64,000 bases of DNA from the NCBI RefSeq assembly GCF_000737315.1, contig NZ_JMCB01000003.1, positions 806,001-870,000 of the forward strand, in the 5' to 3' direction. The notes beneath the pieces were generated by a model. It ran no database searches. It was not told the origin of the DNA and saw only the letters and a program-made list of their open reading frames with translations. Of this stretch, positions 6,019 to 30,461 are shown piece after piece. This DNA is from Hyalangium minutum. Lineage in GTDB: Bacteria; Myxococcota; Myxococcia; Myxococcales; Myxococcaceae. A program made the translations under genes and the position numbers. Position 1 is the first letter of the stretch. Every line of letters starts with the position of its first letter.

Positions 6019-7125
6019 GTGAGCCCTTCCTTCCAGGATCTGTTCGGACATCCCCCGGAGGTCGAAGCCGAGGCCCCCGGGCGGGTGAACCTGATCGGCG
6101 AGCACACCGACTACAACGGTGGCTACGTCCTGCCAATGGCCATCCCGCAGCAGACGCAGGTTGCGCTGCGGAGGCGCGCGGACAAGCGAGTGCGCGCCTT
6201 CAGCGTGAACACGAGCCGGTCCGGAGAGATCCTCGAGTACGAGCTGGGCCAGGAGTCCGTTGGAAAGCACTGGCTCGACTATGTGAAGGGGGTCACACAG
6301 GTGCTCCAGCGCGAGGGCCACGCGCTGACGGGATTCGAGATCTGGATTTCGTCGGAAGTTCCGCTGGGGAGCGGGCTGTCCTCGAGTGCATCGCTGGACG
6401 TGGCCATCCTCCGGGCGCTGCGCGAGCTGTTCTCGCTGCCGGTGGAGGACGTTCCGCTCGCGATCCTGGGACAGAAGGTCGAGAACGACTTCGTCGGCGC
6501 ACCCGTGGGCATCATGGATCCGATGGCTGTCCATCTTGCTGACCAGGGGATGGCGCTCTTCCTCGACACCCGGCTCATGCGCTTCGAGCGGGTGCCCTTG
6601 CCGCGCGCACTGGATCCCATCGTCATCAACTCGGGGGTGGCGCACAACCACGCCGCGGGCGACTACCGCGTCCGCCGCGCGGAGTGCGAGCAAGCTGCGG
6701 CCCTTCTGGGAGTCCAGCAGCTGCGGGATCTGTCCACGGTGGATCTGCTCCGGGCCGAGAAACTGCCAGCACCGCTGGGCCAGCGCGTTCGTCACGTGGT
6801 CACGGAGAATGCCCGGGTGCTTGCCGCCGTCCAGGCCCTGCGCTCCGAGGAGCTCGACCGCCTGGGAAATCTCTTCTACGCCTCGCATGACTCCCAGCGC
6901 CGCGACTACGAGGTCTCAGTCCCTGAGATCGATCTGCTCGTGGACATTGCCAAGGAGGACGCGGACGTCTACGGCGCGAGGCTTACAGGCGGTGGCTTTG
7001 GCGGCTCCGTGGTCATGCTGGCCAAGGCTGGCACGGGTTCCGACGCGGCTGCTCGGATTGCTGAGATTTACGCGAAACGCTCGGGACAGCGGCCCTCTGT
7101 TCTCGTTCCACAGGCCCACAGCTGA
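6019..7125 (+). CDS. galK: Galactokinase
   Basis: PGRVNLIGEHTDYNGG galactokinase signature, VPLGSGLSSSAS GHMP ATP motif, GARLTGGGFGG. Confidence 0.96.
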   Translation: MSPSFQDLFGHPPEVEAEAPGRVNLIGEHTDYNGGYVLPMAIPQQTQVALRRRADKRVRAFSVNTSRSGEILEYELGQESVGKHWLDYVKGVTQVLQREGHALTGFEIWISSEVPLGSGLSSSASLDVAILRALRELFSLPVEDVPLAILGQKVENDFVGAPVGIMDPMAVHLADQGMALFLDTRLMRFERVPLPRALDPIVINSGVAHNHAAGDYRVRRAECEQAAALLGVQQLRDLSTVDLLRAEKLPAPLGQRVRHVVTENARVLAAVQALRSEELDRLGNLFYASHDSQRRDYEVSVPEIDLLVDIAKEDADVYGARLTGGGFGGSVVMLAKAGTGSDAAARIAEIYAKRSGQRPSVLVPQAHS

Positions 7126-7220: not shown

Positions 7221-8333
7221 TCAGCGCACCAGCAGATCAGGCCTCGCTCGGCCCTCCACGGTGAACGTCGGCCACCGCGGATCCACCGTGAGGATCTCCA
7301 GGTCTCCTCCCTCCGTCAGCACCACCGTGTCCTCGATCTTCGCCCCAGGCAACGACGGGTTCCAGGCCATCGCGTTGCTCGGCTGCAGCACCACCTTCGA
7401 CCCTGGCACCGCCACATCGTCACGCGACAGGTAACCGCACGAGCCCCCTTGATGGTGGTACGCCTCCGCCCCCGGATGCCCACTGGCTCGGTAGGCCTCC
7501 ACCATCGCGCTGTAGACCTGCCCCAGGGTCACTCCGGCCCTCGATGCATGGAAGGCTGCTGCTTCGACTCGCGCTACGTCCGCCGCCAACCGGCGCTCCT
7601 CCGCTGTCGGCTCCCGGAAGTAGACGAACCGGGTCAGGTTCGCGAACAGCCCGTGCCGACGCCCGCAGAAGACCAGCATGGCTCGAGCTCCCAGCCGCTC
7701 ATGACTCGCTGTCGCGTGCCGGTGCAACGGCAGCCGCCGCTCCTCCCCCACCAACGTCAACGCCGGGTGGATGCCCCTCGCCCAGAGCGCCTCGGCCCCA
7801 GCCCCCGCGAGCTGCCAGCCCGTCCACTCCGGCTTCGCTTCCCGCAGCACCTCCGTCATCGCCTCCGCCGCGTCTCTCCCCAACGCCCGGTACCGCTCCA
7901 GCTCCTGGGGAAGCAGGGAGTGCCTCGCGTCCACCAGCTCCCCTGGCAGCGGTACCTCTTGCCCCGAAGGCCGATCCGAGGCCACCACGCCCCCTCCCCG
8001 CTTCTCCTCCACGAACGCCTCGCGCTGCCCGCGCTCCGTCCATGGGCACGACCACACCCTCAGCCCCCGCGGCACCTCCTCCTGCTCCATCCGCGCCGCC
8101 TCGATGGCGTCCGTCAACACCCACGCCGACGCACGGGTGATGAGCACCTCGGCCACCCCCGCGTCCGTCGCCAGCAGCACCACGTTCGACCCACCACAGG
8201 TCGCCCACGCGAACCAGTCCACCCCTCGCAGCCGCACCGCGCTCAGGCCGTGCTGCTCCATGATGGCCCTCACCCGCGCCAGCTTCACCTCGAGCTCCGA
8301 CGCCCCTCCCTCCTGCTTCTTCAGCGAGTTCAC
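7221..8333 (-). CDS. M24 (pita-bread fold) family protein, Xaa-Pro peptidase/creatinase-like
   Basis: GTG at 8333 overlaps the stop of the upstream gene (GTGA); motifs [24 protein letters not shown]. Confidence 0.8.
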
Positions 8334-12666: not shown

Positions 12667-14309
12667 GCGTCACGGACAACGGTGCGCTCCGAGCCCGTGA
12701 CTCGGAACGTCTTGACACCCTTCTCCCGGCCCTTCACCTGCATCACCGGGAGCTCTTGCGCGAAGAACCCGGGCCCAGCCTTCTCGATCGTCGTCCCCGT
12801 GGCCAGCAGCTCCCCGGACTTGGCCAGGCCGCACAGGCGCGAGGCCGTGTTCACCGTGTCGCCAATGGCGGTGAACTCGTGGCGCTCCACGCTGCCCATG
12901 TAGCCCACGACCGCCTGGCCGGTGTTGATGCCGATGCCCACCTCGATGGGCTTCTTGCCCTGGGACTTGCGCTTCTCGTTCAGCTCGTCCACCGCGTCCA
13001 TCATCTCCAGCGCCGCCTGCAGCGCGCGCGCCGGATCGTCCGGGTGGGTCAGCGGAGGGCCCCACACGGCCATCACGCAGTCGCCGATGAACTTGTCCAG
13101 GTTGCCCTCGTGGCGGAACACCACGTTGGCCATGGCGGTGAAGAACTCGTTGAGCATCTCCACCACTGCCTGCGGAGACTCGTTCTCCGCCAGCGTGGTA
13201 AAGCCACGGATGTCCGCGAACAGGCACGAGACTTCCGCCATCTTGCTCTGCGCCAAGCCCTCGGTCTCACCCTTGATCACCGCGTCCGCCACCGCCTTGG
13301 ACAGGAAGCGGCTGAGCTCGGCACGGGTAATGGCCTCGGCGCGGATCTGCTCGGCCAGCGCCACGTTCTCCAGGGCGATACCCGCCTGCGCGGCGATGCC
13401 CGTGAGGATCGCCAGGTCGTTCTCGGAGAAGGCGTTGATGCGCTGGCGGCTGTCCAGGAACAGCACTGCCTTGATGGCGCCGTTGACGGTCAGCGGCACC
13501 GCCATGGCGGAGCGGATGCCCTGCGCCACGATGCTCTCGGCGGCCGAGAAGCGCTCGTCGATGACGGCGTCCGCGGTGAGCACCGCCTTGCCCGTCTCCA
13601 CCACGCGCCGCAGCACCGTGTCCGACAGCACCACATTCATCGCCCGGCCCTGGCGGTGGTGCACCACCTCGGTCTCGAAGGTGCCGTCCGACTGGGGCGT
13701 GAGGATGACGCCGTTGTCCGCGGGCAGCAGATCGAACGCCACCCCGAGGATCTGATCGAACAGCTCTTGCTGCGTGCTGGCCAGGCTCACCTGACGGTGG
13801 AACTCGTGGGCGATGCGCAGCTTCTCGTAGTCGCGGCGCAGGGCCTCCATGTCGCTCAGCTCGCCCGCGGGGCGGAAGTTCTGCGGGCCCTGGTCCATCT
13901 GCGCCAGGAACGCCGGCACCGAGCGCGGGTTGGCCACCACCGTCACCCCGGCAGGCGCCGCCGGCACCGAGGGCGCATCCCCCGCGTGGAAGGTGAACTT
14001 GGAGCTGCCCAGGGAGATCTCATCCCCATCCCGCAGCCGCATCTCCTTCACCCGGCGCCCGTTCACGAAGGTGCCGTTGGAGGAGTTCAGGTCTCGAAGG
14101 ATGAAGTCACGCCCGGCCTGTTCGATGACGGCGTGCTCCTTGGAGACCTCGCGGTCCACCAGGCGCAGCGTGTTGGCCGGATGGCGGCCCAGCGTCGTCT
14201 TGGGCCCGAGCGGGAACTCCCCGAGCGTGCCATCCGCGAACATGCCCGTGAGGCGAGGTCCGCGCAGGGTCTTGGGCTGGGCCGGGGAAGGGACAGAAGC
14301 TTGAGTCAC
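12663..14309 (-). CDS. FHA-GAF-class III adenylyl cyclase
   Basis: FHA (LGRHPANTL...VSKEHA...DLNSSNGTFVNG), GAF (GIRSAMAVPL...LFLDS), cyclase FADIRGFT, DKFIGDCVMA, FTAIGDTVNTASRL (Lys/Thr pattern of class IIIb ATP-specific cyclases). Confidence 0.92.
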   Translation of the reverse strand: MTQASVPSPAQPKTLRGPRLTGMFADGTLGEFPLGPKTTLGRHPANTLRLVDREVSKEHAVIEQAGRDFILRDLNSSNGTFVNGRRVKEMRLRDGDEISLGSSKFTFHAGDAPSVPAAPAGVTVVANPRSVPAFLAQMDQGPQNFRPAGELSDMEALRRDYEKLRIAHEFHRQVSLASTQQELFDQILGVAFDLLPADNGVILTPQSDGTFETEVVHHRQGRAMNVVLSDTVLRRVVETGKAVLTADAVIDERFSAAESIVAQGIRSAMAVPLTVNGAIKAVLFLDSRQRINAFSENDLAILTGIAAQAGIALENVALAEQIRAEAITRAELSRFLSKAVADAVIKGETEGLAQSKMAEVSCLFADIRGFTTLAENESPQAVVEMLNEFFTAMANVVFRHEGNLDKFIGDCVMAVWGPPLTHPDDPARALQAALEMMDAVDELNEKRKSQGKKPIEVGIGINTGQAVVGYMGSVERHEFTAIGDTVNTASRLCGLAKSGELLATGTTIEKAGPGFFAQELPVMQVKGREKGVKTFRVTGSERTVVRDA

Positions 14310-14453
14310 GCGACAGACCTCACCGGTGGGACACTATCAGACGCACTCGCCCCGGGGGAACGGCTGCTGGACCGGCCCCTCTCCGCCCCCCCACATGCCC
14401 GAGCAACCGGGCAGACTCAACAGGTATTCGAGAAATCTCCTAGGGTTATCGGC

Positions 14454-15389
14454 CTAAAGCGCCTGAGGTTGCGGGGCTTGCGGGGCCTGCTCCACCGGCC
14501 GCTGGGGCGCCGGATTCCGGAAGGCGATGCCCACCGACGGGTAGAGGGTGACGCCCCCCAGGTTCCTTCTCTGTCCGAACACCTCGGGCTTGCAGAAGTT
14601 ATAACCGCCCGTGATCTCGGCGAAGACGTGGACGTACTTGTAGCCCAGCGAGACGCCGAAGGTGGAGCCGACGAACTCGCTCTTCACCCGGGCCGGCAGG
14701 CCCACGTCGAACCCCGTCACGTCCTTCCCCTGGTCGGCGAAGTTGATGAGCTTCTCGTCCAGCTTGGTGCGGCTGAGGACGTACTTGGGAGCGGCGTAGA
14801 GCCGGAGGATGTCGCCGAAGTCCGTGCTGACATAGAGCGGGATCTCCACGTCCCAGCGGGAGAAGTCGTCGATCTGGACGATCTCCAGCACGTCCAGCAC
14901 CGGGCTCTTGAAGAGGTGGCGGGAGCCCGCCAGCCCGAGCGCCACGTCGAAGGAACGGCGCTGATTCTCGGGCACCTCGGGCCCGTCTCCGGCGTGGACG
15001 AAGCGCACCTTGGTATCCAGGCGCCAGGAGATGCCGCTGTAACGCAGGCCCACATCCCAGTCGTCCGCCAGGCCCGCGCGAAGCGCGAACTCATGGACCA
15101 CGCCCGGGGGAGCCACGGCCAGGGCGAGGCCCGCCGAGAGAATCTGCTGCTGCTGCTCCTGCGTGAGGTTGACCTTCTCGCCGTTCTCGACCTGCTTCTT
15201 GAGGCGTTTGCCCTCCTGGATGGCGATGTCCACCACGTCGACGATCTGCCCGGCGGGGACGAAGGCGCCTGCTCCCAGGGAGACTTGGAACTGCCCCCGC
15301 GTCAGCGGCTTCGCCGTCTGCAGGGTGGAGAGGTTGGAGGCACAGCCCGTCACCAGAGCCAACGCGAGCAGCGGAGGAAGGTATCGCAT
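14454..15389 (-). CDS. Lipoprotein, possible outer-membrane beta-barrel-like protein
   Basis: ATG at 15389; lipobox VTGC; alternating beta-strand patterns (WDVGLRYS, FGVSLGY, YPSVGIAF). Confidence 0.75.
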   Translation of the reverse strand: MRYLPPLLALALVTGCASNLSTLQTAKPLTRGQFQVSLGAGAFVPAGQIVDVVDIAIQEGKRLKKQVENGEKVNLTQEQQQQILSAGLALAVAPPGVVHEFALRAGLADDWDVGLRYSGISWRLDTKVRFVHAGDGPEVPENQRRSFDVALGLAGSRHLFKSPVLDVLEIVQIDDFSRWDVEIPLYVSTDFGDILRLYAAPKYVLSRTKLDEKLINFADQGKDVTGFDVGLPARVKSEFVGSTFGVSLGYKYVHVFAEITGGYNFCKPEVFGQRRNLGGVTLYPSVGIAFRNPAPQRPVEQAPQAPQPQAL

Positions 15390-15453
15390 GGGCTCGAACG
15401 TTATGTGCTTCCAGGCTCTGTTGTCAGGGGGCTTCAACTGCTAAGGGAGCCGC

Positions 15454-17004
15454 GTGCGAATCAAGCAAAAGCCCGAGGACTTCTCCGTCAAGGAGTCCTA
15501 CCGTTTCGATGAAGTCCCCAGTGGGCGCTACCGCGTCTACCTCATGGACAAGCAGAAGCTGTCCACCTTCGATGCGGTGGACCGCATCCGCGACGCGTTC
15601 GGCCTGAAGCCGGGCTCCATCAGCTTCTGCGGCCTCAAGGACAAGCAGGGCCGCACCGAGCAGCTGATCGCCGTGGAAGCGGCGGACGTGGACGTGCAGG
15701 AGCCCAACCTTCGCCTGAAGTACCTGGGGCGCACGGACAAGCCCCTGTCTGCCGCCAACATCACCTCCAACCGCTTCGCCGTCACCGTGCGCTCGCTGGA
15801 GGAGTCCACCCTGGGCCCGCTCAACGTGGCCGCCGCCGAGGTGAACCGCCTGGGCGTGGTGAACTACTTCGACAGCCAGCGCTTCGGCTCGCTCAAGCAC
15901 GGCCAGGGCTTCATCGCCAAGGATCTCATCCGCGGCGACTTCGAGGCCGCGCTGAAGAATTACTTCGCCAAGCCCTCGGAGCTGGACCGGTCCGAGGACG
16001 CCAAGGTGAAGCAGTTCTGGCGGGAGAACTGGGGCCGCTGGGACGCGCGCGTGCCCTTCGAGGGCTCCAAGAAGTACCACCGCATCCTGCGCAGCCTGCG
16101 CGACCACCCGGACGACTATCTGCGCGCCTTCCTGCAGATCGACGCGGACTACCGGGCGATGCTGCTGTTCACCTTCCAGAGCTACCTGTGGAACGAGGGC
16201 GTGCGGCGCTACCTGCAGCTGCTGCTGCCGCGTGAGCACCTCTTCCCCCTGCGCTACCAGGCCGGCACGCTGCTGTTCCACCGCGAGGCCAGCCCCGAGG
16301 TGCTGCGCATCCTGCGCGAGGCCACCTTCCCGCTGCTCGCGCCGGACTCCACCTTCAAGGATCCCAAGGTGGAGGAGGCCGCGAACTGGGCGCTCGGGCG
16401 CGAGAAGATCACGCTCAAGGACCTGGCCATCCAGAAGTCGCGGCTGCTCTACTTCCGGCACGAGGAGCGCCCCGTGCTGAGCTTCCCGCACAAGCTGGTG
16501 CTCGGGCGGCCCATGCCGGACGAGCTCAACCGGGGCTCCATCAAGGTGAACGTCGCCTTCACCCTGCCCCCCGGCGCCTACGCCACGCTCGTGGTGAAGC
16601 GGCTGTTCCACTTCTCCTGGCGCGAGGACACCGCCGACGAGATCCGCGCCAGCCAGCGCCCCCGGCTCACGGAGACGCTCGAGCGCGAGTCCTCTCAGGC
16701 CCCTGGCCGGCGTCCTCGCGGCGATTCGGAGCGGAGCGCTCCCGCGCCCCGGAAGTACGGGGCCCTGGAGTTCGGGGGTCCTGCCAAGCGGTCTCAAGGA
16801 GCCCCCGAGCGCGGCGCGGGTGGGCGCTCCAGGACTGCCGAGGCGTCCCCGCAGACTCGCGAGCCAGCCCCCGCCCAGACGCCCGCCGAGCCCCGCCCAC
16901 CGCCTCCGGGCTTCCGGGAGCAACAGCGCGCCAAGAAGGAGGCCAAGGCCCAGGCCCGCAAGGACATGGCGGCCAAGCCTTCGAAATCACAGAAGAAAAA
17001 GTAG
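15454..17004 (+). CDS. truD: tRNA pseudouridine(13) synthase TruD with charged C-terminal extension
   Basis: IKQKPEDFSVKE, FCGLKDKQGRTEQ (catalytic Asp), NYFDSQRFG, FQSYLWN, FTLPPGAYAT. Confidence 0.93.
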   Translation: MRIKQKPEDFSVKESYRFDEVPSGRYRVYLMDKQKLSTFDAVDRIRDAFGLKPGSISFCGLKDKQGRTEQLIAVEAADVDVQEPNLRLKYLGRTDKPLSAANITSNRFAVTVRSLEESTLGPLNVAAAEVNRLGVVNYFDSQRFGSLKHGQGFIAKDLIRGDFEAALKNYFAKPSELDRSEDAKVKQFWRENWGRWDARVPFEGSKKYHRILRSLRDHPDDYLRAFLQIDADYRAMLLFTFQSYLWNEGVRRYLQLLLPREHLFPLRYQAGTLLFHREASPEVLRILREATFPLLAPDSTFKDPKVEEAANWALGREKITLKDLAIQKSRLLYFRHEERPVLSFPHKLVLGRPMPDELNRGSIKVNVAFTLPPGAYATLVVKRLFHFSWREDTADEIRASQRPRLTETLERESSQAPGRRPRGDSERSAPAPRKYGALEFGGPAKRSQGAPERGAGGRSRTAEASPQTREPAPAQTPAEPRPPPPGFREQQRAKKEAKAQARKDMAAKPSKSQKKK

Positions 17005-17075
17005 GAAACCCGGGTGGGCGAAAATAGGCTCACCCCTGGGCGCAATGGGGGGACCCATGCTGCGTAGACCAGGGC

Positions 17076-17699
17076 GTGAACGCACTCACACTCAACCCCC
17101 TTGGGGATCTCGTCCAGGCCATCGGGTCACTGATGGCTGAGGAGGCCCCATCGCTTCCTTGGAAGGCGGACGTGCAGGCCGCCCGCCGGGGTGACCCGAA
17201 CGCCTTCGAGGCCTTGGTGCGCAGCGTCCAGCGCCCGGTCTACGGTCTGGCGCTCCGGCTGCTCAACAGCGAGGCGGAGGCGGCCGAGGTCGCCCAGGAG
17301 GCCTTCCTGCGCGCCTACCAGAACCTGCACCGCTATGATGAGGGCCGGCCGTTCGATCTGTGGGTAATGGCCATCACCCGCAACCTGTGCCTAGACCTGC
17401 TGCGGCGTCGCACCAAGGTGCGCACCGAGGAACTGGAGCCCATGAAAGAGGTGCTCCCCAGCAATGAGGCCTCCCTGGAAGAAGGCGCGATCGCGCGCCA
17501 GGAGCGCCAGTCGCTCGAGGAGGCCATGGCCACCCTGTCCGCCGATGACCGGGAAGTGCTGGCGCTCTATTACGTACAGAAGCGGACCACGAAGGAGATC
17601 GCCCAGATTCTCGGCTGCGCGCCTGGCACCATCATGGCGCGCCTGTTCCGGGCCCGGGAGAAGCTCCGCAAGAAGATGACAACGGAGGAGCCCACATGA
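17076..17699 (+). CDS. ECF RNA polymerase sigma factor
   Basis: sigma2 AEVAQEAFLRAY...WVMAITRNLCLD; sigma4 TTKEIAQILGCAPGTIMARLFRAR. Start could be ATG 17133. Confidence 0.93.
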   Translation: MNALTLNPLGDLVQAIGSLMAEEAPSLPWKADVQAARRGDPNAFEALVRSVQRPVYGLALRLLNSEAEAAEVAQEAFLRAYQNLHRYDEGRPFDLWVMAITRNLCLDLLRRRTKVRTEELEPMKEVLPSNEASLEEGAIARQERQSLEEAMATLSADDREVLALYYVQKRTTKEIAQILGCAPGTIMARLFRAREKLRKKMTTEEPT

Positions 17700-18199
17700 C
17701 TCCGAACCCGTGCCCGGATCTTGAGGTGCTGTTCACCGAGCTGGAGGCCGGCAAGGGCCCCGCGCTGGATCACGCCGCCACCTGCCCGCTGTGCAGCGCC
17801 GTCCTCGAGGAGCACCGCCAGCTGGAGAAGGATCTCTACCGGCTGGCCGATCCGCTCCCGCCTCCCACCCTGGTGGCCAACGTCATGGCGCGGGTGGCCA
17901 CCGAGCCCACGCCTCTGCGACGCGAGCTGTGGGCGGGCATTCCCATCCTCGCGGCGTCGCTCCTGGTGGGGCTGGGATTGCTGATCACCAATGATCGGGC
18001 GCTGTCCCGGCTGGGCTCGGCGCTGGCGGCGCTGTTCACGGATGGCCGGGTGCTGCTGCAGGGGCTCTCTAGCGGCGCGAACGCGATCTGGAACACCGCG
18101 GCCGCTCCGGTGGCCGGCATCCTCGTTCTCTTGCTGATCGTCTCCCTGTCGGGCCTCAAGCGGCTCGTAGGCGATGGCCCGAACCCTTCGCAGGCGTGA
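17696..18199 (+). CDS. ZAS-type anti-sigma factor with C-terminal TM helices
   Basis: HAATCPLC (HxxxCxxC); 4-bp overlap with the sigma gene; two hydrophobic segments. Confidence 0.85.
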   Translation: MTPNPCPDLEVLFTELEAGKGPALDHAATCPLCSAVLEEHRQLEKDLYRLADPLPPPTLVANVMARVATEPTPLRRELWAGIPILAASLLVGLGLLITNDRALSRLGSALAALFTDGRVLLQGLSSGANAIWNTAAAPVAGILVLLLIVSLSGLKRLVGDGPNPSQA

Positions 18200-18206
18200 G
18201 TGCACC

Positions 18207-19703
18207 ATGATGAAGATCACCGCCCGACTGCTCCTGCCCACCTTGCTGCTCGGCGCCACCGTGGCACTCGCGGCTGAGACTCCCACCCCTGCCCCCACCC
18301 AGGACCCGGCCGCCGAGGATGTGAAGACCATCACCGTGGCCTTCCGTGGCCCGCTCCGGGACGCGATCAAGCGCATCGCCGAGGATGGCGGCATCAATGT
18401 CGTGGCCACCGGCGAGCTGGATACCGCGGTGGAGGTGCACCTCAAGGGCGTCACCGCTGAGCAGGCGCTGCGCACCATCGCTCGGACGTACTCGCTGCGC
18501 CTGGATCAGGATGGCTCCATCTTCACGCTGCGCCCCATGACGGCAGCGGAGAAGGAGGCGGCCAGCGCGGGTACGGCTGCCGCCACGCCTGCCCCAAGCC
18601 CGGGGCCTGGGCCGATGGATGTGCCGCCCGTGCCGCCCATGCCTCCTGTGGCCGTGGCGCCGCTCGCGCCGCCCGCGCCGCCCGCGCCGCCTTCGGTGTC
18701 GGAGGATGCAGAGGAAGAGATGGACACCAGCGAGATCCGGGATCGGGTTCGGCGGGAGGTTCGCAAGACGCAGCGCCGGAACAAGGGCGAGCGGGACGTG
18801 GTGGCCCGAGGCCACTCGCTGGAGGTGAAGGAGAACGACAGCGTGCACAACGCCGTGGTCTACGGCGGCAACCTCGTGGTGAAGGGGCACGTCGAAGAGA
18901 CCGCGGTGGCCTTCAGCGGCAATCTGGACGTCTACGGCACCATCGAAGGCGATGCGAGCGCCTTCAACGGCAACGTCGTGTTGCACCCGGGCTCGGCGGT
19001 GATGGGCAACGTTTCGGCTATCGGCGGGACTGTGGTCCGCAATGATGACGCGCACGTGGAGGGCGCCATCGAGTCCTTCGGCGGCGGCAACGTGGGCAAG
19101 GTCGTCGCGGGCCAGGTGAAGGACACGCTCAAGAAGGAGTTCCGCAAGAAGGACAAGCATGCGGACTCCGACGACGAGCAGGAGGAAGAGGAGGATCGCA
19201 ACGGAGGCGGTCTGCCGTGGTTCTTCATCAAGTTCGCCGCGCTCTTCGGGCTCGGCTTCCTGGGGCAGCTCTTCTTCCCCACGCGCATGAAGGAGCTGTC
19301 GACGGAGCTCAAGGCCCAGCCCATGAAGAGCGCGCTGGTGGGCTTCCTGGGCGCCGTGGCGCTGGTGCCCATCACCCTGGTGCTGACGATCACCATCATC
19401 GGCATCCCGGTGGCGGCGGCCCTGGTGCTGGTGGCGGCGCTGGCGGCCATCCTCGGGTTCACCGCGGTGGCGAGTGAGATTGGCTTGAAGGTGCCGGTGA
19501 TGAGGGGCCGGAAGACGCAGGCGGTGGTGCTGGCGCTGGGACTGCTCATCCTCCTGACCCTGACTTCGCTGCCCGTGCTCGGCTGGCTGGTGGCGATTCC
19601 GACGGCGCTGATGGGCTTCGGGGCCGCGCTCCTCACCCGGTTCGGCAATCGGCTCCGTGGCTTCCCAGAGCCGCTGTCGTCCCGCGACACCCTCGGGGTC
19701 TGA
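18207..19703 (+). CDS. Signal peptide + STN-like domain + polymer-forming (bactofilin-like) beta-helix + multi-TM membrane protein
   Basis: Signal peptide; ITVAFRGPLRDAIKRIAEDGGINVV...VHLKGVTAEQALRTIA (STN/secretin-N-like); GNLVVKGHV/GNLDVYGTIEGD/GNVVL repeats; about 5 C-terminal TM segments. Confidence 0.8.
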   Translation: MMKITARLLLPTLLLGATVALAAETPTPAPTQDPAAEDVKTITVAFRGPLRDAIKRIAEDGGINVVATGELDTAVEVHLKGVTAEQALRTIARTYSLRLDQDGSIFTLRPMTAAEKEAASAGTAAATPAPSPGPGPMDVPPVPPMPPVAVAPLAPPAPPAPPSVSEDAEEEMDTSEIRDRVRREVRKTQRRNKGERDVVARGHSLEVKENDSVHNAVVYGGNLVVKGHVEETAVAFSGNLDVYGTIEGDASAFNGNVVLHPGSAVMGNVSAIGGTVVRNDDAHVEGAIESFGGGNVGKVVAGQVKDTLKKEFRKKDKHADSDDEQEEEEDRNGGGLPWFFIKFAALFGLGFLGQLFFPTRMKELSTELKAQPMKSALVGFLGAVALVPITLVLTITIIGIPVAAALVLVAALAAILGFTAVASEIGLKVPVMRGRKTQAVVLALGLLILLTLTSLPVLGWLVAIPTALMGFGAALLTRFGNRLRGFPEPLSSRDTLGV

Positions 19704-19728
19704 GAAACACGCTCTGAGCCATAGTCCC

Positions 19729-19770
19729 AAGGGGGGCGGGTCCGCACACCGGACCGCCCCCTTCGTGTTT
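19729..19770 (+). terminator. Probable intrinsic terminator of the ECF operon
   Basis: aaggggggcgggtccg-cacac-cggaccgcccccctt-type stem with bulges, followed by a T-rich run. Confidence 0.5.
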
Positions 19771-19846
19771 TCGGCGCTTGGGCCGCTCGCAGCGCTTGCC
19801 TCAGTGCGACAAACCTCTACGCCTGCTGCAAGAGGAGGAGCCTGCC

Positions 19847-20419
19847 ATGCGCCAGCAACCCGGAAACACCGTGATGGCCAAGGCATTCACGCTCCTGGTG
19901 CTCACGACAATGGTCGGGAGTTGTATCCCCCGAGCCAGAGCCTGGAAGGAGCCAGTCCAGTGGCCGAACGATTACTCCGACAAGAACGTCGTGCCTTTCA
20001 TGGAGGCCGGCGCGGCGCTCGCCGCTGCGGCAGCCGTACGCGAAATGGTGCGGACCAACCCATTTCCACGGCTCTTCGAGGGCTGCTCCAGCCCTGAGCA
20101 GGGACTGGATGTCGCCGTCTATCGTGGCCCCACTGCTGGGCTGTTCTATGTGCTGGTGGATCAGCGCTTTGACCGATGCGGAGGACCTCGCGTCCGCGTG
20201 CTCGATGGGTGGTACGAGTACGCGGTCACTCCGCAAGGCGAGGTCATCGCCGAGAGCCCGGCTTCAGCAGGTGAAGAGACATCGCTACCTCCTGACGCTC
20301 ATCCACCCGCGCCTTCGGACGTGGGGCCTCCTCCTCCCACGCCACCGAACCCACCGGCACCCAGTGTGGATGCTGGCACTGTCACCTCCGCCTCTGCTGC
20401 CGAGGACTCAACTCTCTGA
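19847..20419 (+). CDS. Hypothetical exported/lipoprotein with Pro-rich tail
   Basis: Strong SD gaggaggag before ATG 19847; hydrophobic segment ending VGSC; two further Cys (EGC, DRCG). Confidence 0.65.
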   Translation: MRQQPGNTVMAKAFTLLVLTTMVGSCIPRARAWKEPVQWPNDYSDKNVVPFMEAGAALAAAAAVREMVRTNPFPRLFEGCSSPEQGLDVAVYRGPTAGLFYVLVDQRFDRCGGPRVRVLDGWYEYAVTPQGEVIAESPASAGEETSLPPDAHPPAPSDVGPPPPTPPNPPAPSVDAGTVTSASAAEDSTL

Positions 20420-20436
20420 CCCAGGAAACGGCTGCG

Positions 20437-20805
20437 TCAGGGGTTCGTCATCACCTCGAAGAGGTGGCCGTTGGGGTCCACAAAGTAGAGGCCCTGAGCC
20501 GCAAGCGGGTGGCTCGTCTTCAGATTGTCCGGCGTTCGCGGATCGTCCCCGTAGGGGATGCTCTTCGCCTGGAGGCGGCGGAGAATGCCCGCGAACTCCG
20601 CATCGTCGACTCGGAAGGCCAGGTGGTGGCCCTCAATGGGCTGCTCCGAGCGGATGAAGTCGAGCGTGAGTGCGCTGTTCACCCGCACCGGGGCGAAGTG
20701 CCGGTCGGGCCCCTCGTACCTCAGGCCCATCACCTCGGCGAAGAAGCGCGCCGAGCCCTCATGGTCTCGTGCCGGCAAGACCGTATGATCCAAAACGATC
20801 GCCAC
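20437..20805 (-). CDS. VOC (glyoxalase/bleomycin resistance) family protein
   Basis: GTG at 20805 with SD GGAGG; LDHTV, HHLAFRV, LYFVDPNGHLFEV. Confidence 0.9.
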   Translation of the reverse strand: MAIVLDHTVLPARDHEGSARFFAEVMGLRYEGPDRHFAPVRVNSALTLDFIRSEQPIEGHHLAFRVDDAEFAGILRRLQAKSIPYGDDPRTPDNLKTSHPLAAQGLYFVDPNGHLFEVMTNP

Positions 20806-21019
20806 GTCCGCCTCCAAGGCTTGTTGCGAGAGTCCGAGACGCTGTCACGGGCTCGAAATACTGTCAGCTGCGCGCTTCGAGCGAGCGCCTGACGCGCCGC
20901 GCCAGCCCTCCTCGAAGCTGCCGTAGGGCGTGCCATCACCCGGGCTGCTGTCCGCCGGTGACAACTCCTCCCCGTGTCCTTTGACTGCCCCCGGCCGGTA
21001 GGCGAAGTTCTGCGAACCC

Positions 21020-22362
21020 ATGCGACGCATCCCTGATGCCTCTCCCCGCGGCCGCGCCATCACCGTGGACCTCGAGGGCGAAGCCCTCCCCGCCGTCGAG
21101 GGCGAGCCCGTGGCGTGCTCCCTCCTCGCCGCCGGTGAGGACGTCCTCGCCCGCTCCATCAAGTACCACCGGCCCCGTAGCGCCTACTGCTTCGCCGCCG
21201 CCTGCTCTCAATGCCTCATGCGCGTGGACGGCCTGCCCAACGTCTACACCTGCCGCACCCCCGCCCGCGCCGGCATGAAGCTCGAGCGCCAGAACGCCTT
21301 CCCCTCCGCCAAGGTGGACCTCTTCGGCACCATCGACTGGTTCTTCCCTCGGGGCCTCGACCACCACGAGATGTTCGCCGGCGTCCCCGTCGCCGAGCAG
21401 GTCATGGCCAAGGTCACCCGGCAGCTCGCCGGGCTCGGGCTCCTGCCCGCCCAGGAGGCTCCTCCGCGCCTCCCCGCCCGCTCCCTCCGCGCGCGCGTTG
21501 CCATCGTCGGAGGAGGTGCCGCGGGGCTCGGCGCCGCGAAGGTGCTGGCCGAGCGGGGTATCTCTTTTGTCCTCCTCGAGCGCGAGGAGCGCGTGGGCGG
21601 CCGGCTGACCCGGGGCGCGCCGCTGAAGGACGATCCCACCGTTCCGAACGTGGCCTCCTTCCCAAAGGGCAGCGTCCTCACCCGCGCCCACGCCATCGGC
21701 CTCTACAATGATGAGGGAGGGCGCTTCCTGGCCGCCATCGCGATGGAGCCCGAGGGCCTGCGTCTCCTGCAGATCCGCGCGGACCGGTTCCTGCTCGCGC
21801 CCGGTGGCCATCCAGGGCTCCTGCCCTTCGAGAACAATGATCTGCCCGGCGTCTACGCGGGCCGCGCTGCCAGCCTGCTCCTGCGTGAGCACGGCGTCGC
21901 TCCCGAGGCTGCGGCGCTGGTCGGCTGGGGCCCCGAGCTTCATGCCCTGGCCCATCTGATGGAGGCGAACGGCACGAAGGTGGTCGCGGTGGCGGACCTG
22001 CGAGGCCCCTTGCCCCCCGACGCGCACCCCACCGCCTCCGTGGGCAGCGAGCCCAAGGCCCATGGCCTCAAGCGGATCGGAGCCTTCAGCTTCATGCGCG
22101 ACACCGGCAAGCGGAAGAAGGTGGACTGCGACGCGGTGCTCGTCTCGATTCCCACCAGCCCCAGCTTCGAGCTGGCCCGGCAGGGCGGCGCGGCCGTGAG
22201 CTTCGACGCGGACCGAGGCCTCTTCGTGGTGGAGGCCCAGGCGAACGGGAGCACCGCGGCTCCGGATCTGTTCGTCGCGGGAGACATCACCGGTGGTGGA
22301 ACAGCAAAGGAGGCCATGGCCGCGGGTGCCCGCGCCGCCGAGGCGCTCCTGGGAGGTCTGTC

Positions 22363-22366
<4 letters not shown>
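21020..22366 (+). CDS. [2Fe-2S]/FAD oxidoreductase, sarcosine oxidase/proline dehydrogenase alpha-like subunit
   Basis: SIKYHRPRSAYCFAAACSQCLMRVDG...C (Fer2_4); GGGAAGL Rossmann motif; PFENNDLPG; FVAGDITG. Confidence 0.85.
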
Positions 22367-23850
<1,484 letters not shown>

Positions 23851-23863
23851 GCACTACAGGGTT

Positions 23864-23888
23864 CCCCTGTTCTGAACCAGGACAGGGG
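23864..23888 (+). terminator. 11-bp hairpin 14 bp after the oxidoreductase operon
   Basis: cccctgttctg-aac-caggacagggg (one G-T pair); no U-tract. Confidence 0.5.
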
Positions 23889-24074
23889 CGCCCCCTCGCC
23901 CGTCCGAAATGGCAACATCGGCGCGCTTATGGGTAAAAGCAGGAACTCTCAGGGAAAGCAGCCCGGACTGTTCAGGCTCTTTACATTTTGACCCCCCATG
24001 TCAGGGTGTTGGCTTGCTCCAGCCGCTCCTCGCAGGGTTCACCCGTTTCGAGGGATTCCAGGCCTTTACAGTCT

Positions 24075-24090
24075 TGGCACGGGACGTGCT
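24075..24090 (+). promoter_or_regulatory. sigma54 (-24/-12) promoter
   Basis: TGGCACGGGACGTGCT: TGGCACG plus GG-N10-GC exact spacing; predicts +1 near 24101. Confidence 0.7.
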
Positions 24091-24100
24091 CTACACAGGG

Positions 24101-24278
24101 CTCAGATACGTTCAGCCTGGGTGGAATCTCCAGACTGACCTCGAGGACTGGGTGAATCCCCCCACTCTGTCCCGAATCCGCTCCTTCGTTTGGAGCGAGC
24201 AGTGCCCTGGACCGGGTGAATCCCCCCACCCTGTCTTTGCTTCAGGCGGCAGCCTCCTCGGGCTGCCGCTGTTTTTTT
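24101..24278 (+). ncRNA. Candidate sigma54-dependent small RNA with two duplicated AAUCCCCC-loop hairpins
   Basis: Promoter upstream, intrinsic terminator downstream, no credible ORF; four internal hairpins including the 28-nt near-duplicates 24145-24172 and 24209-24236. Confidence 0.72.
24245..24278 (+). terminator. Rho-independent terminator with plus-strand polarity
   Basis: gcggcagcc-tcctcg-ggctgccgc followed by tg and T7 (24272-24278). Confidence 0.85.
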
Positions 24279-24281
24279 GCC

Positions 24282-25151
24282 CTACGCCAGCGACGGATTG
24301 CTCTCCAGCGCCGGGCGCGCGTTCCCGAGCAGAGCAGGCATGTCCGCTCCCGAGGGCTCCTGGAGTCCTCGCCCCACCCACCGACCCAGCGCCCGCCGCA
24401 CCGAGCGCGGAAGGCGGGGCAGCAGCGTCATCACCCAGCGGTGGCCCCAGCCCGGGTACACGAGCGGCTCACTGCGCTCGAAGCCTTCCAGGGCCGCGCG
24501 CGCGCAGCGTTCCACGGACACGTGAAAGAGGGGCGACGCTTCGGCGTGCGCTCCCTCGGCCTGGAGCGCCGCATCCAGCACGGGCCCAGGGGACACCTGC
24601 GTGACGACCACTCCCGAGCCCTCCACCTCCAGGCGCAGGGACTCCAGGAACCCATCCAGGCAGCGGCGAGTGCCGACGTAGGCCGCAGAGCCAGGGAGGA
24701 AGAGCTGGCTCGCGCCCGCGCCGATGCAGAGCAGTCCACCTTGCCCTCGCGCCAACATGGGCCCGAGCAACCTGCGAATGAGGAGCATGGGTGCCACCAC
24801 GTTGACGGTCAGCATCCGCTCGACGCTGCCCCAGCGTTGCTCCACGAAGAGGCCCTGCTCGGACGCGCTGGCCGCGCTCACGAGCACATCCACGGTGATG
24901 AAGTGCCGAGACAGCTCCGAGAGCATGTCCCCCACCTCTCCGGGCCGGGAGATGTCGCACGGGAGCAGCATGATTCCGAGCGTGGGATTGCTCGCGTGCA
25001 GCTCCTCCTGAAGCGCCTTCAGAGGCTCCAAGGCGTGGGACACGAGCACCAGGGTCCGAGCCCGGTGAGCAAGCTGGCGGGCGATCTCTCGTCCCACTCC
25101 GGAGCTGGCCCCGGTGATGAGCACGGTGCCGGAGTCGAGGGGCGGACGCAT
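24282..25151 (-). CDS. SDR family NAD(P)-dependent oxidoreductase
   Basis: ATG at 25151 with SD GGAGGAG; ITGASSGVGRE, CDIS, AYVGTRR (YxxxK-like, degenerate), VSPGPV. Confidence 0.88.
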   Translation of the reverse strand: MRPPLDSGTVLITGASSGVGREIARQLAHRARTLVLVSHALEPLKALQEELHASNPTLGIMLLPCDISRPGEVGDMLSELSRHFITVDVLVSAASASEQGLFVEQRWGSVERMLTVNVVAPMLLIRRLLGPMLARGQGGLLCIGAGASQLFLPGSAAYVGTRRCLDGFLESLRLEVEGSGVVVTQVSPGPVLDAALQAEGAHAEASPLFHVSVERCARAALEGFERSEPLVYPGWGHRWVMTLLPRLPRSVRRALGRWVGRGLQEPSGADMPALLGNARPALESNPSLA

Positions 25152-25425
25152 GAACTCCTCCAGGGGGATGGGTGAGTGGGGCCAAGGGACTCGACCGGAA
25201 AGGTAAGGCCCCCGCCACAGCCGCCGCAGCGCGGCGCCCCCTCCCCAGGAGCAGCGAGGGGAGCAGGCGCACGCAGGATCTGCACCTCCTCGAGAAGGCC
25301 CCGAAAAGTTTGCGCGTGGACACCTCCGCTCCCCCGGATGGCGGTGGCACGCTTCTTCCAAGGATCGGGGTGGCATCCACACATTGAGGGTGCTCAAGAG
25401 CAGCTCCGTACAGGAGGAACGCCTT

Positions 25426-25890
25426 ATGCCCGCGCCGTCTCGCATCCTCGTCCCGGTGGACCTGTCCGATGGTTCCCAGGCGCTCATCGACTACGCCATC
25501 CAGCTCGCCAAGCCCTTCAACGCGACCATCGAAGTGATCCACGCCTGGGAGCCTCCCCAATACGTGGCACCGGATCTGCTCGTGGCCGCGCCCGGGTGGA
25601 ACTCGCAATCGCTCGAGCAGGTCGCCGTCGATGCCGCCACCAAGGAGCTGAACAACCTGGTGTCCAAGGCGTCCGGCACGGCCACTCCCATCAAGCACCG
25701 GGTCGTCGTGGGCGAGGCCGCCTCGACCGTCCTGCGGCTCGCCGAAGAGGGCAAGCACGACCTCATCATCATGGGCACCCATGGCCGCCGCGGGCTGCCG
25801 CGCCTGCTGCTGGGCAGCGTGGCGCAGAAGATCGTCGCTCGGGCCCACTGCCCCGTGCTCACCGTCCACCTCTACGAGGCGGACAAGTAG
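25426..25890 (+). CDS. Universal stress protein
   Basis: SD aggagg; RILVPVDLS; DLIIMGTHGRRGLPRLLLGSVAQKIV. Confidence 0.95.
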   Translation: MPAPSRILVPVDLSDGSQALIDYAIQLAKPFNATIEVIHAWEPPQYVAPDLLVAAPGWNSQSLEQVAVDAATKELNNLVSKASGTATPIKHRVVVGEAASTVLRLAEEGKHDLIIMGTHGRRGLPRLLLGSVAQKIVARAHCPVLTVHLYEADK

Positions 25891-27662: not shown

Positions 27663-30461
27663 TCAGCGGCCCTTGCGCTTCGCCGGGCGCTTCACCACGG
27701 GAGCCGGCTTGGGAGCCTCCACCTCGTGCACGCCGAGCCACGTGGTGATCTCCGCCACCTCATCCGGCTTCTCCAGCTTCTTGTACTCCTCGCGGACCCG
27801 CTCGGCTTCCTGGCGCGCTTCGTTCTGCTGGCCGACTTCCCAGAGAGCCTTGGCCAGGCCGAACCCCGTCTCTGCCAGCCCCTCGGGTTCAGCGTCCTTG
27901 TAGGCCAGCGCCTTGCGCAGCGGCTCCAGGGAGTCCTGAGCCCTGCCCGCGGCCAGCAGCGCCTGCCCCACCCCATCGTAGGAGTACTGCAGATCCGGGT
28001 GGTCCTCGCCGAGCGCCTTGCGCTTGATCGCCAGGGCCTCGTTGAAGGTCTTCACGGCCTCGTCGTAGCGCTTGAGCGCGATCAGGCCCATGCCCAGCTC
28101 GTCCAGGGTGTCCGCCACCGCTGGGTGCTCGGGGCCCTGCGTCGCCTTGCGCACCTCGAGCGCTTGCTGCACGTGCTCCTGGGCCTTCTCCAGATCGCCG
28201 CTCTCGCGGTACGCCGTGGCGAGCATGGTGTGGCGAGTCGCCACCTCCGGGTGCTGCTTGCCCTTTGCCGCCTCGGTCTGCTGCAGCGACTGGGTGAACA
28301 GCTGGATGGCCTGCGGGTACTCCGCCATGCGCAGCGCCGCCAGCCCCAGGCCATGCGACACCTTCGCGCGCTTCGGATCATCCGGTCCCAGGTTGGCGTC
28401 CACCAGGGCCCGAGCCTTCTCGAAGTAGTCCCGCGACTCTTGGTAGCGGCCCCGCTGCAGCGCCACGTAGCCCAGGTTCCCCATCAGATCGATCGCCAGC
28501 GCCGGCTCGCCGCCCACGCGCTTGAGGATCGCCACCGCCACCTGGCCCCACCGCTCGGCCTCCTGCGGATGGCCGTTGTTCACGAGCGTGAAGATGAGCT
28601 TGGTCAGCACCTCCAGCCGGATCCGATCTGACCGGCTCGCCTCGGCGGTGTCGAAGGCCTGCTCCAGTTGGTGGATGCCGTCCTCCGACTGCCCGCTCTG
28701 CTGCAGCAGCCAGCCCAGGTGGTAGCCCAGCTCCGCCTGCAGCGGCGGGTACGTGGTGGCCACCACCTCGGGCTCGAGCTTCTTCGCCAGCTCCACGCCC
28801 GCCTTGTACCGGCCCGCATCGTGGAGCGCCTTCACCTCGGCCACCCGTCCGCCGAGCTGCTCGACGGCCGTCTTCTTCGCCGGATCCGCCGGCAGGGGCG
28901 GCTGCTCCGCCAGCGTCGCGATGTCCTGGCACGGCTGCAGCGAGGGCAGCGCCGAGGCCGCGTCCACCGCCTTCTCCACCACCTTGCCATCCGCCTCGGT
29001 CAGCAGGCTCGCCAACGCTCCGAGATCCTTGCGGCGCCGATCCAGGCACACCATGCGCATGGAGAGCAGTTCCTCCGTCTGCTCGCCGCGCACGCGGGTG
29101 GCCTCGCAGGCCTCGGTGTGCATGCCCGCCCAAGAGCGCGCATACCCATCCAGCAGGTTCACCACCTTGGCCGCCGCCTCCGCCGCGAAGGGCTTGCCCG
29201 TCGCCGTGAAGGCCGCCTGAAGCTTCTGGTGCGCCTCGGGCCCCCACACGGAGGCCACCAGCGCGTCCGAGCCCGCGCACACCCGGCTCTGCTGATACGC
29301 GTACCCGCCCACGCCTGCCGCCGCCAGCGCCAGCGCGCCCACCGCAGCGATCGCCCCGCGCCGCTGCCCCCGCCGCTGCTGCTGCGAGAGCGCCTCGAGC
29401 AGCGCCTCCATGGAGGGGAACCGATCCTCCGGGTTCAGCGCCAGCCCGCGCATCACCGCACGGCGCACCCACACGGGGACCTTCGCGTCCGCGGGAGGCT
29501 CGCGCGCCGCCGTGGTGTGCGGCAGCTTGCGAATGCCCTCGGCTGTGCCGCGCTCCGTGCCCCGCGAGCTCTCCGCCGCCGTCTTGGCCACCTGCCGGGG
29601 CTCGAAGGGACGCTTGCGGAACAGCGCCCAGTACAGCGAGGCACAGAACGCGAACTGGTCCGCGCGCGCATCCACCTCGGTGCCCAGGTACTGCTCGGGC
29701 GGCATGTACTGTGGCGTGCCCATGATGAGGCTGCTCTCGGGCAGCGCCAGGGCGATGGGCTCACTCCGATCGTCGATGCCCTCCAGGTCCCCGCTCAGGG
29801 CCTGCTCCTCGGCCTCGGCCACCTGGGCGAGCCGGGCCAGACCGAAGTCCAGCACGCACACGCGGTGGTTCTCGCCGATGAGCACGTTGGAGGGCTTGAA
29901 GTCCCGGTGCACCAGCCCGGCCTTGTGAGCGGCCACGAGCCCCTGGCCGGCCTCCACGAAGACGCGGAGGATCTCCGGCACCGTGTGCTGCTCCTTGCGG
30001 ATCCACGTGCTCAGCGTGCGGCCCTGGATGAACTCCATGGCCACGAACACCTGGTTGCCGTAGGTGCCCACGTCATAGACGGAGATGACGTTGGGGTGGG
30101 AGATGCGGGCCATGGCCTGGGCCTCGCGCAGCATCCACGCGCGCGAGCTGTTCCCATCCGGCGTCTGCTTGTCCGGCCGCAGCAGCTTCAGCGCGACCTT
30201 GCGATCCAGGTCCGGATCATAGGCCGAGTACACCACGCCCATGCCGCCCTGCCCCAGGGGCTTGAGCAGCACGTAGCGCTCGATGCTGGTGCCACGCTCG
30301 AGCTCGAACGACTCCTGCGGGCCCCCATCCGTGGGCTGGGAGGGAATGGACGGGGATGGAGAAGGCCGGGACCGGGAGGCGTGGCCACGCGCCTCACGGG
30401 TGGGCAGATCGGTATCGATGCTCTTCGGCGGAACGCGGGGTTCGGTCTTCGAGTCCTCCAT
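27663..30461 (-). CDS. Ser/Thr protein kinase with TM helix and TPR repeats
   Basis: [40 protein letters not shown]; [19 protein letters not shown]; repeated GxxHPxVA TPR linkers. Confidence 0.95.

Follow-up and report, generated by a model that had tools for sequence, protein, structure and literature searches.

The question raised by this locus is whether a short intergenic region of the myxobacterium Hyalangium minutum (positions 24075-24278 of a 64,000-nt stretch of contig NZ_JMCB01000003.1, hereafter referred to as the window) harbors a small RNA (sRNA) gene of its own and, if so, what kind of RNA it encodes and where it came from. A preliminary description, made from the sequence alone, had proposed a sigma54-dependent sRNA built from duplicated hairpins, acting either as a protein sponge or as a C-rich regulator directed against Shine-Dalgarno (SD) sequences. 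The analysis presented here indicates that the locus is very likely a genuine gene, not described before, for a small regulatory RNA in a group of soil-dwelling myxobacteria. In the favored account, to which we give somewhat better than even odds, it is a stand-alone, sigma54-dependent noncoding sRNA of ~180 nt, present in a clade of Hyalangium-related Myxococcaceae, that would be derived from a protease gene and act in trans by anti-SD pairing. The most interesting aspect is that its regulatory region demonstrably, and its 3' module probably, descended from a protein-coding gene.

All structural elements named in the preliminary description are present in the window (Table 1), i.e., four stem-loops (SL1 to SL4), a terminator ending in seven T residues, and four copies of GAAUC (GAATC in the DNA, starting at 24124, 24154, 24174, and 24218). 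The region 24101-24278 folds with a minimum free energy of -75.5 kcal/mol (z = -3.9), and none of 200 dinucleotide shuffles folds as well. SL1 (24112-24138) has a stem of 8 bp with a single C.A mismatch in addition, three of the 28 nt distinguish SL2 from SL4, and the 16-mer GGGTGAATCCCCCCAC occurs in two exact copies 64 nt apart, with no other copy in the window at up to two mismatches. The terminator stem-loop (24245-24270), whose loop holds an anti-SD-like CCUCC, is followed by the T7 tract at 24272-24278. The stop codon of a short-chain dehydrogenase (SDR) gene (24282-24284) lies 3 nt past this U-tail on the opposite strand, and the downstream gene is thus convergent, as had been noted.

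The promoter had been called exact, which holds for the GG-N10-GC spacing but is slightly overstated for the sequence, as there is one mismatch to TGGCAC-N5-TTGCW (GTGCT in place of TTGCW). The motif is not rare by itself, with six one-mismatch matches in the window against 2.0 expected. The promoter call carries weight because the GG-N10-GC is conserved in every orthologous locus examined, namely, all eight sRNA loci and the protease loci of sister lineages described below, M. xanthus included. Approximately 190-210 bp 5' of the promoter lie a palindrome and an additional half-site, of which TGTCC-N9-GGACA and the downstream CTGTCC are common to sRNA- and protease-bearing loci. This element had been taken for a hairpin belonging to the upstream operon; it is in fact a conserved palindrome of the regulatory region, and because no U-run follows, it is not a canonical terminator. 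The segment 23864-23906 is more likely a candidate enhancer, i.e., an activator-binding site. Between palindrome and promoter, CTTTACA is invariant and TGCTCCA and GTAAAA are nearly so over 13 loci from at least five genera or lineages, and we infer that these boxes are putative sites for IHF or an activator. The hexamers of the palindrome (CTGTyC...GGACAG) recur, in opposite order, in the basal stems of the hairpins of the RNA (GGACnG...CnGTCy), which may be a coincidence, a trace of the origin of the hairpin, or a shared DNA-binding site. Directly 5' of its -24 element, M. xanthus (L138, 5770-5805) carries a perfect inverted repeat, CTCCGAG-N10-CTCGGAG, that the window does not have. The orthologous protease promoter of M. 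xanthus is situated at ~5560-5830 of L138.

The sRNA is conserved in related genomes, with seven further distinct homologues of 146-240 nt bringing the family to eight distinct members. The closest relative, on a forest-soil contig (L006), has the same promoter-RNA arrangement. Pattern scans yielded members in Hyalangium versicolor H56D21 (L082; contig NZ_JAHXBF010000005.1, locus positions 7432-7611, predicted RNA start at or near GCAGAUAC), in a Hyalangium metagenome-assembled genome (MAG; L048, identical to L130), in another myxobacterial MAG (L101), and on three metagenome contigs (L131, L132, and L133). A scan of a genome collection with the 16-mer gave at least 120 matches, nearly all of them due to chance; the full hairpin was present in at least three genome loci (L048, L082, and L101) among the matches listed, and the taxonomic distribution is therefore a lower bound. 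Promoter, upstream boxes, hairpin (one or two copies), and terminator are shared by the members, and the unit persists where another gene lies upstream (L101) or where another, AraC-type gene lies downstream (L082). No open reading frame (ORF) is conserved across the homologues, and a small-peptide gene was rejected on this ground.

A common architecture emerges from these loci. The leader, (N)CAGAUAC(C/G)UUCA, runs into a helix P1 (GAUACC/GGUAUC, or GAUACG/CGUAUC in L082) that encloses a variable insert, and the 5' domains vary widely in length. P1 is followed by an unpaired (G)AUCCCCC, which in most members precedes the small hairpin GCUCC/GGAGC (SL-B, corresponding to SL3 of the window), by one or two hairpins of the form GGAC-n-GGGUG / AAUCCCCC / CAC-y-C-U-GUCC, and by the terminator GGCGGCAGCC...GGCUGCCGCC with a likewise C-rich loop and a U-tail. 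The duplicated hairpins that had been regarded as the basis of the RNA are present in the window, but the duplication is restricted to the sub-lineage of the window, L133, and L048, and most members have a single copy. In every member the C-motifs are predicted to be unpaired, so that each RNA exposes three to five UCCC(C) motifs, either as single-stranded AUCCCCC, in one or two hairpin loops AAUCCCCC, or in the C-rich terminator loop.

A covariance model (CM R1) was built on the 3' core; its E-values are rough. Family members scored 96-114 bits, except for L006, which is truncated by its contig and reached 80.6 bits, versus at best 19.9 bits, or 15.6 bits for a full-length match, in 738 kb of unrelated DNA that all contained the 16-mer. 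Mean pairwise identity is 93.5% in the hairpin and 91% in the terminator stem, compared with ~51% for the linkers and, in the neighboring gene, 85% at third codon positions. This pattern points to purifying selection on hairpin and terminator.

Rfam 15 was searched with the window and five homologous loci, both at the gathering threshold and with E-values up to 10. No match at the gathering threshold was obtained in the whole window, and the remaining matches were at chance level (best: Scr3202, 20.4 versus 52 bits; ar7 (RF02342), 16.5 versus 60 bits in the window; CcsR1 (RF02791), 20.8 versus 65.3 bits in L082); of these, just the ones to the C-rich-loop sRNAs ar7 and CcsR1 are suggestive. 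No match named Pxr was returned by the Rfam 15 scans, in which the presence of a Pxr model is unconfirmed. Pxr of M. xanthus and other Cystobacterineae is nevertheless the most relevant comparison: like the present family, it is a myxobacterial sRNA with a sigma54-type promoter and a terminator hairpin at its end in a host lacking Hfq. It was compared here as the ancestral Pxr sequence rebuilt from published primers and probe (PMC5568312), minus its first 12 nt. The preliminary description had set the two apart by locus, and the window RNA is indeed not at the Pxr locus, an intergenic region that has the gene pxrR/nla19 (Mxan_1078), encoding a sigma54 response regulator, on its upstream side and adjoins Mxan_1079/1080 (PMC5568312); it is situated between an oxidoreductase operon and the SDR gene (an AraC gene in L082), with no activator gene in the 64 kb. 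The likeness is, however, closer than had been assumed. In a gapless comparison of Pxr SL1 with the family hairpin, 15 of 17 apical positions are identical (GGUG-GU-UCCCCCC-ACCC versus GGUG-AA-UCCCCCC-ACCC), as opposed to 20 of 32 over the whole hairpin, and the basal stems are unrelated. Both homology and convergence may explain the likeness. Further differences are that Pxr SL2 (GGUG-AGU-CACC; GGUGAGUCACC-like) is absent from the family, that the family terminator GGCGGCAGCC/GGCUGCCGCC does not resemble Pxr SL3 (CGGCCCGGUACCC/GGGUAUCGGGCCG), that Pxr has one C-motif in ~108 nt whereas the family has several in a longer RNA, and that the regulatory region of the family is that of a protease gene. 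Given the wrong locus, the lack of an adjoining pxrR/nla19, and the lack of a Pxr-type SL2 or SL3, the sequence comparison identifies the RNA as something other than Pxr.

Other known RNAs share single traits with the family. C-rich motifs of CcsR1-4, NfeR1/alpha-r14, and RsaE/RoxS pair with the SD regions of many mRNAs. The CcsR/NfeR1 RNAs of alpha-proteobacteria and RsaE/RoxS of Firmicutes likewise expose C-rich motifs on tandem hairpins, and CcsR1 and ar7 show the weak cmscan likeness mentioned above, far under the gathering thresholds. These RNAs belong to other phyla, their motif is CCUCCUCCC rather than AAUCCCCC, and their promoters are controlled by RpoHI/II or are sigma-A promoters controlled by Rex/ResD, unlike the sigma54-type promoter of the family. 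With CsrB/RsmZ the family has in common a reiterated loop motif on repeated hairpins whose copy number varies by lineage; it differs in having only three to five sites, no GGA motifs (in the window, the loops read AAUCCCCC, UCCUCG, and GUGGAAUCU, and GGA is absent from the motif that is repeated), no candidate binding protein, and no sequence or model match. Judged by these comparisons, this is best regarded as a new family within a known kind, the sigma54-dependent, C-rich-loop sRNAs of myxobacteria, and it lies outside every Rfam family.

The origin of the sRNA is suggested by what sister lineages carry at the same site. A gene for a Trypsin_2 lipoprotein protease of ~265 aa occupies the corresponding intergenic site in M. 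xanthus, M. stipitatus, Archangium lipolyticum, strain GXIMD 01537, and a number of MAGs, and the protease promoter together with ~230 bp upstream aligns with the window. The shared elements are TGTCC-N9-GGACA, the third half-site CTGTCC, GTAAAA, TGTTCA-N5-CTTTACAT, TGCTCCA, and TGGCAC-N5-nTGC. The alignment thus identifies the sRNA promoter as orthologous to the protease promoter, i.e., it is not an orphan by origin; the earlier statement that promoter and terminator have no protein-coding client is correct in that they delimit a stand-alone noncoding unit, but it could not take this descent into account. By tblastn, no remnant of the protease was seen either within the window or within those flanks of the sRNA loci that were examined. 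In a tree of the upstream oxidoreductase gene, all sRNA loci form one clade (158 of 200 neighbor-joining bootstraps) whose sister is a protease-bearing MAG clade, and all outgroups carry the protease. The sRNA clade is therefore nested among protease-bearing lineages, and the protease state is ancestral.

Part of the sRNA resembles the 3' untranslated region (3'UTR) of the protease mRNA in some of these lineages. Full-length model matches, to be read against the full-length chance ceiling given above, were obtained for the protease 3'UTRs of L008/L009 (32.4 bits) and L007 (27.6 bits) of the sister clade and of L134 (27.4 bits) of another lineage. In each, a short 3'UTR containing (A/C)AUCCCCC directly follows the protease stop codon, with CAUCCCCC or AAUCCCCC and then a similar terminator. 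L001 is 99% identical to L007 in the adjoining gene, yet at 6550-6552 it lacks the ~88-nt 3'UTR module (6551-6641 in L007/L008), and this module was therefore gained or lost on a short time scale. Two weaker model matches, at 2496-2608 of L001/L007 (18.8 bits, full length) and at 7500-7604 of L004 (14.4 bits), were near the chance ceiling and were not used; the former is a hairpin with a C-rich loop plus a terminator after a DUF8173 gene and may be an unrelated terminator. C-rich motifs also occur in the protease mRNAs of relatives, both in 5'UTR hairpin loops (AAUCC(A)/AUCCCC) and in spacers between SD sequence and start codon, e.g., GGAG-AUCCCCCGACC-AUG. The orthologous locus of M. xanthus (~4.74 Mb of CP017170) lacks the 3'UTR module, and its position and content reveal no evident link to the M. 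xanthus candidate sRNAs from TRIC-seq near MXAN_RS24205 and RS10995.

Taken together, the sRNA probably arose from the protease mRNA upon loss of the coding sequence (CDS). A sigma54-driven protease mRNA would first have acquired a 3'UTR with C-motifs; the protease CDS would then have been lost in the Hyalangium-like clade, joining the promoter to the 3'UTR-derived module; and the 64-nt unit would subsequently have been duplicated in tandem in the group of the window, L133, and L048. The family would thereby resemble 3'UTR-derived sRNAs such as CpxQ, DapZ, SroC, MicL, and NarS, as a counterpart of its 3' module, terminator included, forms the protease 3'UTR of sister lineages. It would differ from them in that the parental CDS is gone from the sRNA clade and the RNA has become an independent gene under the promoter of the former mRNA. 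The locus represents an unusually clean natural series for the birth of an sRNA gene, ranging from the protease only (M. xanthus, M. stipitatus, and L001) via the protease with a C-motif 3'UTR (L007, L008, and L134) and a stand-alone one-hairpin sRNA (H. versicolor, L101, L006, L131, and L132) to the duplicated hairpin (the window, L133, and L048).

With respect to function, transcription would be switched on by an enhancer-binding protein (EBP) encoded elsewhere, the same regulator as for the protease in relatives. No GAFTGA or Walker-A signature of a sigma54 activator occurs in any frame of the window. As the regulatory DNA is orthologous, this activator can be sought in the tractable M. xanthus, a species in which rpoN is essential, via the protease promoter. 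The sRNA would then act in trans without Hfq, its C-rich loops pairing with the G-rich ribosome-binding regions of several mRNAs and blocking their translation, as for Pxr, CcsR, RsaE/RoxS, and NfeR1. Unpaired UCCC(C) motifs such as those of the family are characteristic of sRNAs that bind G-rich SD regions, e.g., RsaE/RoxS, CcsR, and NfeR1. Myxobacteria have no Hfq, a C-to-A change in the Pxr SL1 loop abolishes function (PMC5684412), and Pxr contacts several mRNAs near their SD sequences according to a TRIC-seq preprint (bioRxiv 10.1101/2025.09.11.675593). On the basis of these properties of Pxr, its similar apex, and the exposed C-motifs of the family, anti-SD pairing is favored here over a protein sponge. 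Pxr is the best-studied myxobacterial sRNA so far; another sigma54-driven family whose loop has the same apex offers a comparative handle on its Hfq-free mode of action, i.e., on key nucleotides, shared targets, and a possible shared chaperone. A bolder version, which we put forward only tentatively, is that the family represents a second, independent branch of Pxr-type sRNAs, switched by sigma54 and an EBP, based on the shared GGUG-NN-UCCCCCC-ACC apex, and born from a protease mRNA with its CDS lost, with the apex marking a common partner, either G-rich ribosome-binding sites or a chaperone substituting for Hfq. If true, a cue from the environment to which the cell formerly responded with a secreted protease would now switch on a regulator acting after transcription.

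Several observations weigh against the account of a protease-derived anti-SD sRNA. The transcript and its 5' end are predictions from sequence, and no convincing target emerged when the window was crudely scanned for GGGGGAU adjoining start codons. RNAalifold, which the preliminary description had suggested applying to homologues, found no compensatory pairs in the family core and hence no significant covariation. Among 11 hairpin units, four pairs with double changes were counted, which 62 of 500 shuffles also reached (40-62 of 500 over the counts compared), and which is not significant; the changes between SL2 and SL4 do preserve structure as had been described, but are not backed by covariation across the family. 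The near-invariance of the stems accounts for the weak covariation; individual compensatory changes do occur, namely, GGAC/GUCC to GAAC/GUUC in unit 1 of L048, outer-stem changes, the P1 change in L082, and inner-stem changes in the protease 3'UTR version of the hairpin. The fold is well supported by thermodynamics and conservation, short of covariation proof, and the structure evidence is moderate overall. A large share of the protease 3'UTR scores comes from terminator similarity. Derivation of the sRNA 5' half from the protease 5'UTR and first codons is not supported and stays a mere possibility, as just short matches (GAUCCCCCG and UUUGGAGC) were found, with local-alignment p values of 0.1-0.9 against shuffles, and the support for the deletion scenario is therefore confined to the promoter and the 3' module. 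The 9-mer GAUCCCCCG of protease 5'UTRs is also found in the 5' part of the sRNAs of L131 and L132, where overall similarity is not significant. Relative to L133, ~40 nt are missing from the window copy, comprising the 3' strand of P1 (GGUAUC/CGUAUC), the first AUCCCCC, and the first GCUCC/GGAGC hairpin, and it may be a decaying variant, as the P1 3' strand and the first C-motif are lost.

These points bear on three rival explanations. The loss of part of the 5' domain in the window, the unequal lengths of the 5' domains, the insignificant covariation, and the ancestral protease gene would all fit an evolutionary relic, i.e., a protease mRNA with its CDS deleted, transcribed or not, that is functionless and kept by recent ancestry. 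This is unlikely, as hairpin and terminator are more conserved than both the linkers and the synonymous sites of the neighboring gene, the unit has outlasted the replacement of either flanking gene, eight lineages retain an intact promoter with the full set of upstream boxes, and the hairpin unit was duplicated with both copies retained. Conservation could in principle also act on the DNA: the basal-stem hexamers GGACAG/CTGTCC are the half-sites of the upstream palindrome, and the stems are invariant rather than covarying, leaving room for a reading in which the GGACnG...CnGTCC repeats bind or titrate the regulator of the palindrome and do not belong to an RNA gene. That reading is very improbable, since orientation and spacing differ (GGACA-N18-TGTCC in the hairpins versus TGTCC-N9-GGACA upstream), the equal conservation of the loop AAUCCCCC and of a U-tailed terminator is left unexplained, a -24/-12 promoter points toward the element from a constant distance, and one stem change (the one in L048) is compensatory. 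Both the functionless relic and the DNA-level site are thus regarded as less likely than an sRNA.

A protein sponge, by contrast, would be an sRNA with another mode of action: the AAUCCCCC/UCCCC loops would titrate an RNA-binding protein that recognizes C-rich loops (e.g., a KH-domain protein), in the manner of CsrB/RsmZ, and in relatives this protein would have the protease mRNA as its substrate. It is consistent with three to five exposed copies of one motif per RNA, a number raised by tandem duplication, with the near-invariance of the stem as well as the loop, which is more in keeping with recognition of a shaped hairpin than with a simple seed, and with the same type of motif in the 5'UTR hairpin loop, SD-AUG spacer, and 3'UTR of the protease mRNAs of relatives. 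The sites are nonetheless few beside CsrB, GGA motifs of the CsrA type are absent, and we know of no global regulator binding C-rich loops in myxobacteria. That the protease mRNA has the motif too may be due to nothing more than common descent, and for Pxr, whose loop has this apex, contacts of the loop with mRNAs are reported. A sponge is consequently considered doubtful, and anti-SD pairing remains the preferred mode of action.

Table 1. Positions of the predicted sRNA, its regulatory DNA, and adjoining features (window coordinates unless a locus is named)
Feature	Position	Strand	Basis or remark
FAD-dependent oxidoreductase (DAO / sarcosine-oxidase-beta-like)	22363-23850	+	Last gene of upstream operon; Pfam; synteny anchor
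Palindrome CCCCTGTTC-N7-GGACAGGGG	23864-23888	.	Plus third half-site CCGTCC, 23900-23906
Regulatory boxes GTAAAAG (23933-23939), TGTTCAGGCTCTTTACAT (23969-23986), CTTGCTCCAG (24014-24023)	23933-24023	+	Conservation
Sigma54-type -24/-12 promoter TGGCACGGGACGTGCT	24075-24090	+	GG-N10-GC spacing exact
Predicted small RNA, ~178 nt	24101-24278	+	5' end from usual distance to the -12 GC
5' domain: leader CAGAUACGUUCAG and SL1 (loop GUGGAAUCU)	24104-24138	+	Conserved leader
Hairpin unit 1, SL2: GGAC-U-GGGUG / AAUCCCCC / CACUC-U-GUCC	24145-24172	+	Fold, repeat
Single-stranded GAAUCC and SL3 (CGCUCC/GGAGCG, 24179-24197; SL-B of the family)	24174-24197	+	GGAGCG invariant in family
Hairpin unit 2, SL4: GGAC-C-GGGUG / AAUCCCCC / CACCC-U-GUCU	24209-24236	+	Fold, repeat
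Intrinsic terminator GGCGGCAGCC-UCCUCG-GGCUGCCGC, U7 tail	24245-24278	+	Terminator scan
Convergent SDR ORF	24282-25487	-	Pfam adh_short, ORF residues 121-308
C-rich motifs of protease 5'UTRs	L001/L008 ~5720-5760; L134 4735-4760; L138 5835-5868; L004, L005		

The genes around the sRNA are those of a conserved neighborhood. The upstream operon consists of two oxidoreductase genes, one for a Fer2_4/FAD protein and the other for the DAO-type protein; the upstream FAD oxidoreductase shares 90-92% identity with proteins from soil MAGs and 82-83% with Archangium and Myxococcus proteins. The true start of the SDR gene is probably internal to the ORF given in Table 1, because the SDR proteins of relatives are 271-291 aa long. 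Also kept in relatives is the region 12756-19703, with genes for a TruD pseudouridine synthase, an extracytoplasmic function (ECF) sigma factor (17076-17699), a ~167-aa protein, and a DUF8173 protein, and a gene for a Ser/Thr kinase with TPR repeats (27663-30461, minus strand) is likewise part of the shared gene neighborhood. The spacer between the DUF8173 gene and the oxidoreductase operon (19703-21020) measures 1.3 kb versus ~130 bp in relatives, has a lower G+C content, contains a 213-aa ORF (19778-20419) without a Pfam match, and may be an insertion. Lastly, a further sigma54-like promoter, TGGCACGCTTCTTCCA, is located at 25345-25360 on the plus strand, just 5' of a universal-stress-protein gene (25384-25890), and the identical 16-mer is also found 5' of usp in L134 (5708-5723), so the neighborhood may hold two sigma54-controlled units.

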